Positions 8,701 through 37,248 of a stretch of 64,000 nt of DNA are shown piece after piece. A program made the position numbers and the translations under genes. This DNA is from Monocercomonoides exilis PA203 (lineage: Eukaryota; Protista; Preaxostyla): assembly GCA_001643675.2 (NCBI GenBank), contig LSRY02000034.1, positions 992,001-1,056,000 of the forward strand. The letters run 5' to 3'. The stretch's first letter is position 1. Every line of letters begins with the position of its first letter. A model generated the notes under the pieces. That model was not told where the DNA came from, did not search any database, and saw only the letters and a program-made list of their open reading frames with translations.

Positions 8701-9005
8701 TGAAAAGCAGTTCCTTGAGATAATCGCTCAATTGATGTTTTTCATTTTATATCATTTCACAAACTGGGAAAATAATCATTTTAAAATTCAAATTGATAAG
8801 GATTATAACTTATTAAAATTATTGCAATTGAAAAGCTAAGGTAATATCTGTTGACAATTTAATTTTTAACATTCAATTTCAAGGATAAATGTGCAAAATT
8901 CTTTCATTTTTGAAAGTAACAATGATGAATTCCAAACTTTTTCTGATATCATATCATCATAAGTCTTTCATTCTTAAAAAAGAAGAAGAAATTGAGGAAA
9001 ATATT

Positions 9006-9404
9006 GGAAAGATTGCACATATGCGGACCCTTTTGATCATAGAACCATAATAATATTTATAGGGTTTAAATGAATTCTTTTTCTGACTTTTGTAGTTGTT
9101 TTAGGGTTAGGGTTATCATAAAAATCTTCTTCAAAAAGTTGTTTTAGGCTGTAGGGTTGTGTCTCGAATCTTCTTTATAGGGTTTTGATGAGAAAAATGA
9201 GTTTTTTTGTTGACTAAATTTTTAGGGTTAGGGATATCAATAAAAAAATAAATGAAAACACAACCCTTTGGGGTGCAGAAATAGCACAACAGGTTAGGGT
9301 GTTGGAACAGGACGAGAAGGATGCGGGTTCGATTCCTCCCGTATTCTTCTTTTTTTTGCAAAAATTTTCAAAAAATGAAAGGTCCGCATAAGTGCATTCT
9401 TGCC
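9006..9404. mobile_element. 399-bp TIR element (MITE), Merlin-like signature, carrying TTAGGG boxes and a tRNA-like unit
   Basis: TIRs GGAAAGATTGCACATATGCGGACC / GGCAAGAATGCACTTATGCGGACC match at 21/24. Perfect 8-bp TSD AAAATATT at 8998-9005 and 9405-9412. Confidence 0.88.
9275..9357 (+). ncRNA. tRNA-derived Pol III unit (A box, B box, T8 terminator); not a functional tRNA
   Basis: A box TAGCACAACAGG at 9282-9293, B box GGTTCGATTCC at 9326-9336, T-run at 9350-9357. Acceptor and anticodon stems do not pair. Confidence 0.55.
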
Positions 9405-9530
9405 AAAATATTTAAAATATTGCGCAGTGCAAAATTCATAATTCAAAAAATTACAAACCAAATTGAATTGACAAATGAAATTACATTGGTTTGGATCAAA
9501 TAAATAATTTGTTTATGAGAATACTCTGAA

Positions 9531-32378: not shown

Positions 32379-33586
32379 TCTGCAGGCGGGTGGGAAAATC
32401 GTTTATTTGAGCAGACAGTTTGCAATTAACGAAATAATCAGAAAACAGCAACATGTTTGATGATCTGCAAAATGAAAAGGAAACAAGCGCAATACCTGTT
32501 GCTTTTCTTTGAAAAATTATTGAAATAATAGAATATTCAACAAAGCCTATGATCTTGCCTGTGAAAGCCAGAAAAAGAAAACTTAAGTTTCTTAATGATC
32601 CAACCAACTTTAAATAAAAATGAAGAATTGGATTTTGTTTCGAATTGTTAAATTTTGTTGATTGAGTCAGATTTTTTCTTTTATCGGAGTAGAGAAAACA
32701 AAACACGCAGAAATAGATATTTATGGAAAAAGAATGAAAACAACAGCCAAAATTAAAAAGAAAGACTTTTTCGACAATTTGCACAGTTGAATCAGACTGA
32801 AAACAAGGACAATAAATGTTTGTGTGTTTGATGAATTTCGTTTTATTTTTTTATTTTCTTTTTTTTCAATTTTCAGTTTTCATTCAAGATGACTCATTGG
32901 ATAATTGAATGGAAAAAATAAGACCAAAAATCAAAATGGAATTGTCGATTCAATTGTGAAGTCAGACAAACAGCAAAAGGAAATAGCAAAATGATTTTGA
33001 AGTGAAATGGAAAAAATAATAAAAAAATGAAGCGTTAAACAATGAAAAATAACCAAAAACATAAAGAAGTTCAGTTTATAAACAATGATATAACTCAAAA
33101 CACTCAAAACAAAAAACTCGTGAAAATACGAGCAAGTTTTTGATCTAATAAATAATACAAAAATTACCAGATCTTTTTTCAAAAATTAAAAAAATAAAAA
33201 AATATTCTCAGGAATAGCACATATTTGCATTTTGAAGGTTTCCTGTTATTTATTTTTTTCCAAAAGTGCTCTGGAGAGACAGAAAATTTTTGTTCCGTAA
33301 AAAAAGCGGGATATGATGGGGTCAGTAATTTATCGGGACCTTTATTTTTCCGGTGCCTCAATTTTTAAATAGAAAATTAAAATTCCCACTTTTTATATAT
33401 TTATTAACTTTATCAGTATGTAAGCAAACCCTGAAATTTTGGATAATCACATTTGAATTCGAAGCCTATTTCCAAAGGCGGGGAGATGGGGGATGGTTAG
33501 TCACTTCCACCAAAAAAAATAAATAAATAGGTGGGAAACAAGGTATGCCAAACCATTAAAATTCGTATTAAATGTGAATAAATATT

Positions 33587-33980
33587 GGCAATATTTAAGA
33601 AAGGTGGGCAAAATTGATCTGACCCAGTATAATTATATTTTTAGGGTTAAAATTCAAAAATAATCTCTGTATTAATTGTTTGGTTCAGGTTGTAGGGTTA
33701 GCGTAACAGTTCTTGGGCTTAGGGTTTTGTTCCCGCTCTTCTTTTTAGGGTTTGCGCTCGAAAAAAGTGGTTTATTTTTTGATCAATTTTTAGGGTTAGG
33801 GTTTTGTTATAAATATTTGTGTAAGAAAAGTATAGAAAAATAGAGCACTCTAACCGATCAGCACCAGCGACTTGCTAACAAAATTGCAAGTTGGTGAGTC
33901 GAAGGTTCGAACCCGGAGGGGTGCTCTTTTTTGCCTTTATTTAAATAAAAATTTTTTGCCCACCTTTCTTAAATCATGCC
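33587..33980. mobile_element. 394-bp TIR element (MITE), Merlin-like signature, carrying TTAGGG boxes and a structured Pol III unit
   Basis: TIRs GGCAATATTTAAGAAAGGTGGGCAAAA / GGCATGATTTAAGAAAGGTGGGCAAAA match at 25/27. Left TSD TAAATATT at 33579-33586; the complete right copy is displaced to 37166-37173 by a nested insertion. Confidence 0.88.
33843..33932 (+). ncRNA. Putative ~85-nt Pol III small RNA with a tRNA-like internal promoter
   Basis: Terminal stem GAGCACTC/GGGTGCTC, A-box-like TAACCGATCAG, internal hairpin CACCA-ACTTGC/GCAAGT-TGGTG, B box GGTTCGAACCC at 33904-33914, T6 at 33927-33932. Confidence 0.6.
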
Positions 33981-35309
33981 TAAATTAACCCTGGGTGACG
34001 TGGTGACTTCTGACGTGACATTTTTTATTATTGACGGACGTAACAAAAAATTCCACGACACAAATCAAAACCATAATATCGATTAATTGTTTTAAAATAG
34101 TTAATGTTAAAAATATAATACATTTTATTTAATTTTTAAATCAGAAAAATACAGAAAAATGTTTTTCTCAAATCTTCCATAATTCATTTTTCACTGCCGT
34201 GTAAGCGGTGAACGGAATTTTGACACGTCACTAACGTCAGTGACTCCTGACTCCACTTCAAGTCAGTTTTTCAAAAAAATCAAAAAATGTGGAAGAAGAA
34301 TAAATAAAACAAATCAAATCAAAGAATTCATATGATTACATTTTTGTCAAAGATGCAACCATAAATTTTTGCTTTTCTTTTCATATTGCAACTATTTTGA
34401 TGGAAGAAAAAATCATAACTCCAAAAAATGAAACCCTATAACACCAATTGAAGTTTATCACAATTGCATAAATATTTGAACTGGAATATTTACCAGGTAG
34501 AGATTTATTAAATATTAATCATGAATTAATGTCTTATTCATTGTTAATCGAAATGAGAAAAGCTTCAAAAACCGTTTTTGAAGATCAAACATCTTTCAAG
34601 AATATGCTGAAACTTTAGAAACATTTTGAATCTCCCACTGGATTATTGATGAAAGTTTATTCTGTAAAAGGATTGCCGCAACTGCTTCTTATTCACAATG
34701 GATAACCCAAAAATAAACAAGAAAAAATAAGAGCATATATACACAAAAAAATCTGAATGCTATTAATTGTTGAGGTTTGTGATGTTTTAATTGAATTAAC
34801 CTGTTGTTTGTTTTGACGAGCAATTCGAATTCTCATCAATAATAAAATAATTTCTTCTGCTTTTAAAGAACAAGGTTTTCAATTTTTGTGAACTTTTATT
34901 GCTTCTCGTTTTCTTTAATTTCAAATGGTCAGCAGTTACTCATCATCCGCTTCTCTTGGCTGAAATTGTTTGGAATTCACGGTTAAAGCAAAGTTAATGA
35001 AGAGACCAGATAAATACATAACGACAAGAAGAGGAGGAGATACAGCTCGGAGAAACGAGATAGCAAGATTCTTTCTATTTATTAAAAGAATATTATGTTC
35101 AAACCAGTTATTCACGGTCAATTTTCAAAGAAAAAATGAAAAGAATAAAGGATGTGTCTTTTTTTAATTGTTTTTGTTTATTCGTTCTATCGAAATGAAG
35201 TGCAGTTAATAATTTTGTTCAAGAATAGAATCTGATTTCTGTTTATTTTTTTTCCCCGTGAAATTGTGATAAATGCAATAGTTTTCATGAATAAAAATTT
35301 ATCTTTCTC

Positions 35310-36730
35310 CTTTTTTTGGAATTCACATAATAATCAGAAACCACTAACAACATTTCAGTATAAAAATTTCTGTCAAGAAAATCAAACATTTCACCTTTGC
35401 TTGTTTTGACATCTTCACATCCATCTTCTTCCATCCTTTCGAATGATCGTCATTTCAATCTCTTTCTTTTCGCTTCTTCCATTTCTTCTTTCTCCTCTTC
35501 TTTCAATCTCGTTGTAATAATTTGAAAGAATTCCAAGCTTTCTCATGTGATCCTGCAATTCAATGTTTGCCTCTGAATTTCCTCCTAAACAGCATAAACA
35601 ACTCCTTCTTTCTGAAAAGCACCAATTTTTACAGTCCTGTTTTATGCTTCTCCTTTTAAATATTCGAGGCATCCGCCGAGAAAGTCTGGACAATTTTTCT
35701 TTGATGCTCGATGCACCTGAACAATGCTGTTGATAAGTTCAACGTATTCTTCATTCCAAAATGTGCATGAGTAAAAAAAATCGAAAATTGTTGTTAACCA
35801 TCTCCTTAATATAAACTCTTCTTTCTCTTCTGTTACTCTTTTTTCTTCTTTTCCTCTCCCCCAATCAATACATCTCATCAACTCTTCCAATTCCCTTCTT
35901 GCCTCTCTCCAAAAGTGCAGCTCATTTTCAATCTCTCTCTCCTAGTTTTTGTTATTGCCCAATCTGTGGATCAAAAACGACTAAGCACATTGATAGGCGA
36001 GTAGTGAAAAATTGTGATGCTTCTGATGATATTTAATGATTTCTTTGATTTTTTTCTAAAAATGGTCTTTTTTCATTTCCTTAAAAAAAGTAAATTATAT
36101 CAATTAAATGAAGAAACGACAATTCAAAATTTATCAATAAACAAATCAAACCGAACACATATTAGAATTGCTCAGAGCCAGCAAAGCCATTTCCACCTCA
36201 TTTAATGTTTTCTCGTTTTCCTCTTTCCTCGATACAGCGTTCTGGTGCCATGGCATACAAATCGATTGTATTTCTGAAGAAGTCATAACTTATAAAAAAA
36301 ACAGCATCTACAAAGATTAATCAGCAGTTTTTCGTTCTTTCCTTCTTTCTTATCGTTTTCGTCAATTATCATCCTTTCAAATCTTTTCCTCATATAAATT
36401 TCTGAAAGGCTTGAGTGATTATTCTTTTCAGCTTATTGCAATATCTCAATTGCTCCAACAATAGAAAGATATTCACAATCGATATTATCATTTTTTCGTT
36501 CATCTTTCATATTTTTTCGATGGTTCAGCAGTGAAAATAGAGTAAATATTGAAGATATTCATATCCTTCATTACTTCATTCATTTCTTCGATTTTTGTTT
36601 CTTCCCTTCCTCAATGCAATCACAAGTTTACAAAATAATTCTGACATTCAAAAAAAAAATAAACAAATGCAATTATCATGACTTTTATGCTAAATTAAAA
36701 TTTCGCACCCATGTATTTTTCTGTGTTGTA
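35310..36730 (-). pseudogene. Repeated hypothetical family copy 5, heavily decayed
   Basis: Fragments ELHFWREARRELEELMRCIDW, WNEEYVELINSIVQV, EVEMALLALSN and VSDYYVN, with multiple stops and frameshifts. Confidence 0.8.
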
Positions 36731-37038
36731 CAATTTATATCTTTAAGATAGGAAATAAAATTTAGCATGCATTGCCATTTTGATTTAAAAAGAGAATTTG
36801 CATATTCTTTCACTAAATAAATCATGCCATATTATTAACACAAAAAGCGCAAAAACCATTCCTGTGCCTACACAATTCTTTCGTACACATGCATTTTTTC
36901 ACAACTATTAATGCAAAACATAGTTTCATTTTTTATAAATTTACGTTGTAATGGGATTTTTGTGAAATACAAAATTCTTTTGAAGACGTAGTTTAACATG
37001 CCATAATTAACAAAATATTTTTTCCCAAAAAGAAAAAT

Positions 37039-37039
<1 letters not shown>

Positions 37040-37102
<63 letters not shown>
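37040..37102. repeat. Poly(T) tract of ~63 nt
   Basis: Directly visible, just inside the right end of the 3.2-kb element. Confidence 0.95.
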
Positions 37103-37103
<1 letters not shown>

Positions 37104-37248
37104 AAAGTGGAAAACTGGTGACGGACGTGACGATATTTTTTCTTCACGTCACCCAGGCTTAGGCCTAAATATTTAATTTCAATGAAAATTGAAAATTGAA
37201 ATTAATAAATTAATAGATTGGACTTAAGATCATAACCATAATAAAAAA

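Follow-up and report, generated by a model that had tools for sequence, protein, structure and literature searches.

A Merlin-type MITE of Monocercomonoides exilis with an apparently constrained cassette of telomere boxes and a Pol III-type unit

The element at positions 33587-33980 of the window (the whole 64,000-nucleotide stretch of the Monocercomonoides exilis genome that was analyzed) is a non-autonomous Merlin-type MITE of 394 bp, a known kind of transposon. What is new here is the unusual and apparently constrained cassette that it carries, a set of telomere boxes joined to a Pol III-type unit, whose mechanism we infer. The features of the element, of its flanks and of a sister element near position 9 kb are as follows.

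8998-9412, + strand: sister element of family A (9006-9404) with a perfect duplication, AAAATATT; six boxes, B box at 9326-9336, T8 run
33579-33586, no strand: left copy of the 8-bp target duplication, TAAATATT; the same octamer occurs again at 37166-37173
33587-33613, + strand: left terminal inverted repeat (TIR) of 27 nt, beginning with GG (repeat search); 18 such end sites genome-wide
33614-33806, + strand: conserved core, with TTGATC just past the left end and then the telomere-repeat box array (core profile match at 33615-33806, E = 2.8e-58)
33642-33803, + strand: six TAGGGTT boxes, at 33642, 33693, 33720, 33746, 33791 and 33797, all on one strand
33843-33926, + strand: tRNA-like unit of 84 nt, with a 9-bp closing stem (33843-33851 with 33918-33926), an inner hairpin and a T-arm-like B box (MFE fold)
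33904-33914, + strand: B box, GGTTCGAACCC, a perfect fit to GGTTCGANNCC
33927-33932, + strand: T6 run straight after the closing stem, Pol III terminator-like, followed by a short spacer and the right end
33954-33980, - strand: right terminal inverted repeat of 27 nt (repeat search)
33986-37162, no strand: nested inverted-repeat element of 3,177 bp, outside the MITE proper, with its own 8-bp duplication, GCCTAAAT (33978-33985 and 37163-37170)
37166-37173, no strand: displaced right copy of the MITE target duplication TAAATATT, identical to the left octamer

The two 27-nt ends are complementary at 25 of 27 bases, and both start with GGCA. The original prediction had assigned this terminus to the 9-kb element as well, where it breaks down at the left end, which reads GGAA; the lengths that it gave for the two elements, 394 and 399 bp, were accurate. 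Its AT-rich 8-bp target stands as a perfect duplication, TAAATATT, with the amendment that the right copy does not adjoin the element. The octamer on the right flank is mismatched because the 3,177-bp element inserted at the right edge of the MITE; recovery of TAAATATT behind this nested element therefore gives the MITE a perfect target duplication. The nested element (33986-37162) has ends without a GG start, and tblastn revealed no Merlin frame in it. Within the MITE, the last two boxes overlap to form a double box (33791-33803) that lies ~40 nt 5′ of the unit, across an A-rich spacer.

The element has the properties of a MITE: it is short and without coding capacity, and it has inverted ends, a target duplication and near-identical copies. 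Its GG-initiated TIRs and 8-bp duplication agree with the Merlin superfamily, for which duplications of 8 or 9 bp are expected, and M. exilis harbors at least seven Merlin families with GG termini, ends of 23–29 nt and 8-bp duplications (Lopes et al. 2021, PMC8101967). The duplication length also fits hAT, yet the ends of sister families whose interiors are homologous to this one recur on elements encoding a Merlin transposase. The suggestion that the window holds an undescribed system does not survive this assignment, as the element is a MITE of a superfamily already reported in M. exilis (PMC8101967).

The proposed kinship with the 9-kb element was borne out. The interiors align over ~188 nt with a local score of 80, compared with 22.6 ± 2.9 (maximum 38) in 1000 dinucleotide shuffles. 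A whole-genome blastn search linked the two elements at E = 4.7e-9, and nhmmer did so at E = 7e-5 with the family B core alone and at E = 8e-26 with the core profile. The divergence that had been noted outside this interior is equally real: the 27-nt ends of the two elements, which represent families A (9 kb) and B (33587-33980), are very different, and their tRNA-like units cannot be aligned (z = −0.3).

We then searched the M. exilis assembly (82.3 Mb in 101 contigs; Nanopore assembly, PMC8767320) for further members. One transposase fragment encoded in it matches an M. exilis protein at 100% identity. Family B comprises six full copies with 85–100% identity, plus interrupted or shortened copies, and family A comprises eight or nine full copies. 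The core profile, built on the core, also matches families A, C, D, E and F, of which C (~409 bp), E (~399 bp) and F (404 bp) are similar in length. The box array and a slot for a tRNA-like unit are common to at least five families (A, B, C, E and F) with very different ends. The layout of telomere boxes and Pol III-type signals is thus kept across end types, as had been claimed for two of them; family D, with inverted repeats of ~120 nt, keeps the box array and core and is without the unit, and family G, with a distinct unit type, was seen solely as pattern-search matches. A strict pattern (double box, 85–115 nt, B box, 8–25 nt, five T) matched 19 genomic loci, and no locus when read backwards.

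The modules hold in the other members as well. Among the 28 full copies of families A, B, C, E and F, perfect 8-bp duplications flank 22, the B box is exact in 24, and a run of T5–T10 is found at the same place, within 11–16 nt after the B box, in 26; all boxes lie on the same strand, with none on the opposite strand in any copy. A decayed old copy (L006) retains one box and has a mutated B box. The ends of these five families are 27 nt long, start with GG and are followed by TTGAT (TTGATC except in F), and their bodies differ strongly. Families B and C are ~86% identical from position 20 to ~218 and have unrelated units, 3′ spacers and outer ends. The E and F units are homologous (z = 14.8), whereas those of A, B, C and E resemble one another solely around the B box. 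In a MITE family, the ends are usually conserved and the interior drifts. The cassette MITEs reverse this pattern, keeping the interior and exchanging the ends and the tRNA-like unit, which suggests that these DNA transposons carry a function that acts in cis.

A search for autonomous partners with the same module, as had been proposed, succeeded for families C and E, both of which have partners that encode a Merlin transposase. The transposase domain PF12762 (DDE_Tnp_IS1595) has at least 150 matches in the genome. Locus L055 is a complete element of 1,482 bp with family E ends and the duplication AGTTTCAT; its open frame of 276 amino acids matches PF12762 at E = 1e-24, and ~490 nt past the stop codon lie the 3′ half of the core, a unit of the E-MITE type, a T-run and the right end. 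Of the family E MITE core, L055 has just the 3′ half and the motif that follows the end. Two more E-type cassettes (contigs C43 and C8) lie ~450 bp downstream of Merlin DDE matches, and on contig C10 an intact DDE match is followed, ~470 bp downstream, by a C-type unit and its right end, these three being known by position only. Since units stand beside the transposase in E- and C-type copies, the tRNA-like unit is native to at least two autonomous Merlin lineages. Its presence at the 3′ end of these copies rules out that it is cargo of MITEs only. Judged by these sequences, the MITEs with the cassette derive from autonomous Merlin lineages.

Family B has no such partner: the assembly holds no long or autonomous element with B-type ends, and all 18 genomic sites of this end type lie in MITE copies. 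Longer B copies were considered as autonomous elements and ruled out, being B copies with nested inserts, one of which encodes a pogo-like DDE_1 protein. Either the B partner has been lost or family B was moved by another transposase. It is plausible from the divergence of the ends that subfamilies with different ends use different transposases, as had been suggested.

The cassette is not a general Merlin feature. The published autonomous families F1–F7 contain no TAGGGTT, almost no B-box heptamers and no end cores of the A, B, C or F type, and Merlin transposition therefore does not need the cassette. In the paper describing them (Lopes et al. 2021, PMC8101967), neither MITEs nor telomere repeats nor tRNA are mentioned. 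Two metagenomic Merlin contigs (L104 and L105), with 36–47% protein identity, have neither boxes nor a B box. A metagenome scan with the post-end motif gave no match, and a lookup of an M. exilis transposase in public contigs returned nothing.

The contig ends of M. exilis carry TTAGGG arrays; the MITE boxes are therefore the host's own telomere unit. In an alignment of the six-family core, invariant columns concentrate on the boxes and on a CTTCTTT block. Box columns, set on family B, are identical at 0.80 in the other five families compared with 0.53 elsewhere, a difference equalled by 5 of 5000 random block placements, in an alignment that may anchor on the repeated motif itself. The boxes are not a general Pol III upstream element, as 29 of 30 true tRNA loci are without them within 400 nt upstream. 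Downstream of the array, unrelated units fill one slot, equally far from the double box, and in each of them the B box and terminator are intact. Such recurrence fits selection for having a unit of this kind; it also fits module exchange by template switching. The original prediction of selection on the module is accordingly upheld in part: the best-conserved boxes, the exact B boxes and the hits by tRNA-homing transposons (see below) argue for constraint, and the exchange of modules accommodates the same layout.

Next, we assessed the Pol III character of the unit. The hallmarks of a type 2 Pol III gene found in it are the perfect B box GGTTCGANNCC at 33904-33914 and the T6 run at 33927-33932; genuine tRNA genes of the M. 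exilis genome likewise show a T run shortly downstream. As RNA, the 84-nt unit folds with an MFE of −38 kcal/mol (z = −4.8 on the + strand versus −2.2 on the opposite strand). Its identity as a tRNA gene was rejected, the covariance model and ARAGORN both being negative and the likeness to true tRNAs being confined to the T-arm region. Rfam searches with the units returned no tRNA even at E values up to 10 and no other known RNA family at gathering and relaxed thresholds, and ARAGORN reported no tRNA in the window or in eight loci. By eye, the B-family unit has no convincing A box (TRGCNNAGTGG, ~30–60 nt upstream of the B box); A-box-like strings are present in the units of families A, C and E.

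The 5′ end of the unit is a hot spot of insertion. In families B, C and E, ten of the 11 copies that carry an interruption have their breakpoint at −13 to +16 relative to it, and a search with the C-type 3′ module showed that homology resumes at element positions 244–267 in seven C copies, with the unit starting at 251. The inserts at unit starts are of at least four end types, and one encodes a pogo-like DDE_1 protein. Inverted-repeat transposon ends also stop 6–10 nt upstream of tRNA genes at eight of 30 tRNA loci, representing ~5 independent events. Three of the four end types found there interrupt Merlin MITEs at the unit 5′ edge too, the exception being the type at L074/L075 and L087. The tRNA-upstream ends lie at L081/L082, L088/L089, L078, L074/L075 and L087, upstream of position 1501 on the tRNA strand. 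The transposons that target genuine tRNA genes strike the tRNA-like unit too, and on this basis it probably acts as an RNA polymerase III gene. The B, C and E units are dissimilar in sequence, so that the invaders are unlikely to recognize a shared primary-sequence site; a Pol III start complex would be the simplest common denominator of their targets.

The reading that we consider probable is that the element is a Merlin (IS1016/IS1595-related) MITE with a cassette kept for the element's benefit through its Pol III unit and telomere-protein boxes. In such a scheme, a Merlin DDE transposase supplied in trans would recognize the 27-nt GG-initiated ends and move the element by cut-and-paste, making the 8-bp target duplication. 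The cassette would combine five to six host telomere repeat units, arrayed in one orientation, with, ~40 nt downstream, a tRNA-derived unit that has an internal B box (and an A box in some families), a closing stem and a T-run. In the cell, the unit would be assembled into a Pol III transcription complex (TFIIIC/TFIIIB), the boxes would be bound by a telomere-repeat (Myb-type) protein, and the cassette would be retained through a benefit to the element, most likely open or insulated chromatin. The ends, duplications, copy families, autonomous relatives, motif conservation and insertion hot spot can be read directly from the genome; from these we infer protein binding, transcription and benefit. 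Several observations count against the Pol III and cassette reading: the unit is not recognized as a tRNA, the B unit is without a clear A box, and tRNA genes are without upstream boxes. So do the cassette-free families F1–F7, the unit-less family D, the decayed L006 copy and the lack of a B-type autonomous partner.

How the cassette would benefit the element can be put in more concrete terms. In yeasts, both TTAGGG-binding Myb proteins and tDNA/TFIIIC sites exclude nucleosomes or serve as boundaries. By analogy, we favor, at modest probability, the view that the box array recruits a host factor that holds the chromatin of the element open or insulated. We also put forward, as a possible and decidedly tentative interpretation, that the cassette is a chromatin module in which a telomere-protein array and a TFIIIC/Pol III unit form a boundary or anti-silencing device for Merlin elements, with the side effect that every MITE copy would serve as a decoy tRNA gene and draw tRNA-homing DNA transposons. 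Were this true, the Pol III machinery would connect three tiers of mobile elements.

Other explanations have to be weighed against a cassette kept for the element's benefit. One ancestral MITE core may have been joined repeatedly to other Merlin ends and 3′ parts by template switching in gap repair, with boxes and unit functionless for the element and carried over neutrally. The sharp borders of the B/C homology, alike from position 20 to ~218 and unrelated beyond, are what such joining would leave, as is the limited overlap of the autonomous L055 with its MITE (post-end motif plus 3′ core half); the absence of the unit from family D and of the cassette from F1–F7, and the decay of individual old copies, agree with it as well. 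Neutral carry-over is nevertheless rather unlikely in our view, given that the boxes are markedly more conserved than the spacers, that the B box and T-run persist in unrelated units in the same slot and at the same spacing from the last double box, and that tRNA-homing transposons use the unit as a target.

The remaining two accounts each give a function to one module, and we regard both as improbable. The TAGGGTT boxes could be subterminal sites for the transposase or for an element-encoded cofactor, as in Ac/Ds and the Emigrant MITE, their likeness to the telomere being incidental; heptamers repeated on the same strand near one end are a typical subterminal-repeat layout (PMC1636448, PMC3260210). 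The same boxes recur, however, in families whose very different ends make different transposases probable, there is no TAGGGTT at all in the published autonomous families, and the array is one-sided and matches the host telomere unit exactly. Boxes common to families with different ends, and lacking from most autonomous families, are thus unlikely to be transposase sites. The unit, in turn, could serve the transposase messenger of autonomous elements as a tRNA-like signal for 3′-end processing or termination and be a passenger in MITEs. In L055, the C-type copy and the other E-type copies, it does come after the transposase frame, reading on the same strand and with a T-run behind it. Yet the MITEs retain the B box and T-run with no messenger to process, ~490 nt separate the unit from the stop codon in L055, and a Pol III start complex accounts for the insertion hot spot better than RNA processing does.

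Comparison with known systems sets the cassette apart from each of them. Merlin superfamily transposons, including the M. exilis families F1–F7 (PMC8101967), share the GG ends of 23–29 nt, the 8-bp duplications without consensus and, in autonomous relatives, a DDE_Tnp_IS1595 transposase, whereas the published families are without telomere boxes and mostly without B-box heptamers. tRNA-derived SINEs and the TFIIIC-bound SINE and tDNA insulators (Alu, B2; PMC7014570, PMC3744447) resemble the element in mobilizing a degenerate tRNA-derived Pol III promoter with a B box and a T-run, and thereby in spreading potential TFIIIC sites. SINEs, however, are retroposed: they lack inverted ends, their duplications vary in length and their tail is A-rich or derived from a LINE; the M. 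exilis element is a cut-and-paste transposon with 27-nt inverted ends and fixed 8-bp duplications, its unit lying at the 3′ side with the terminator directly after. Its inverted ends and fixed duplications rule out that it is itself a SINE.

The invaders recall Ty3, TRE5-A and DGLT-A, which target Pol III start sites, in that insertions cluster no more than ~15 nt from where a Pol III-type unit starts; in contrast, the M. exilis invaders are inverted-repeat DNA transposons, one type being pogo-like (DDE_1), and the target unit lies inside another transposon. Ac/Ds and the Emigrant MITE (PMC3260210, PMC1636448) likewise have short repeated motifs by one end of a non-autonomous element; the M. 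exilis motif differs in being the host telomere unit, in recurring across families whose ends are unlike and in being missing from most autonomous Merlin families.

Should the unit prove to be a functional Pol III gene, sites for TFIIIC/Pol III and for telomere proteins would be dispersed by Merlin elements across the genome of M. exilis, a well-studied amitochondriate eukaryote, which would provide a natural system for studying how DNA transposons recognize Pol III start sites. The hot spot also offers a way to tell, from sequence alone, which tRNA-like sequences are handled by the cell as Pol III genes.

Several individual copies showed further rearrangements. Target duplications are lacking at the two oldest B copies (L005:323-1205 and L006:394-1055, minus strand), and ~300 bp downstream of each lies a degenerate Merlin transposase frame in matching orientation. 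The DNA of the two loci ceases to be homologous ~20 nt beyond the MITE; their adjacency to the degenerate frames reflects either chance or a composite element. At L061:1568-4750, a near-perfect palindrome, with outer arm segments 100% identical and inner segments 99% identical, carries one family D element per arm and could be an inverted duplication or an assembly artefact. It is flanked by the end of a pogo-like element and by a tRNA gene that starts 5 nt past the arm. The family A copies at L040 with L044 (C80:670093-673427) and at L041/L042 (C26) are split inside the core, at positions ~148–166, by inserts of ~2.9 kb and 0.47 kb, respectively, with overlaps that suggest duplications of the 8-bp type. 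Finally, at L045:1800-1920, a diverged A-like element runs directly into a long CTT trinucleotide array.
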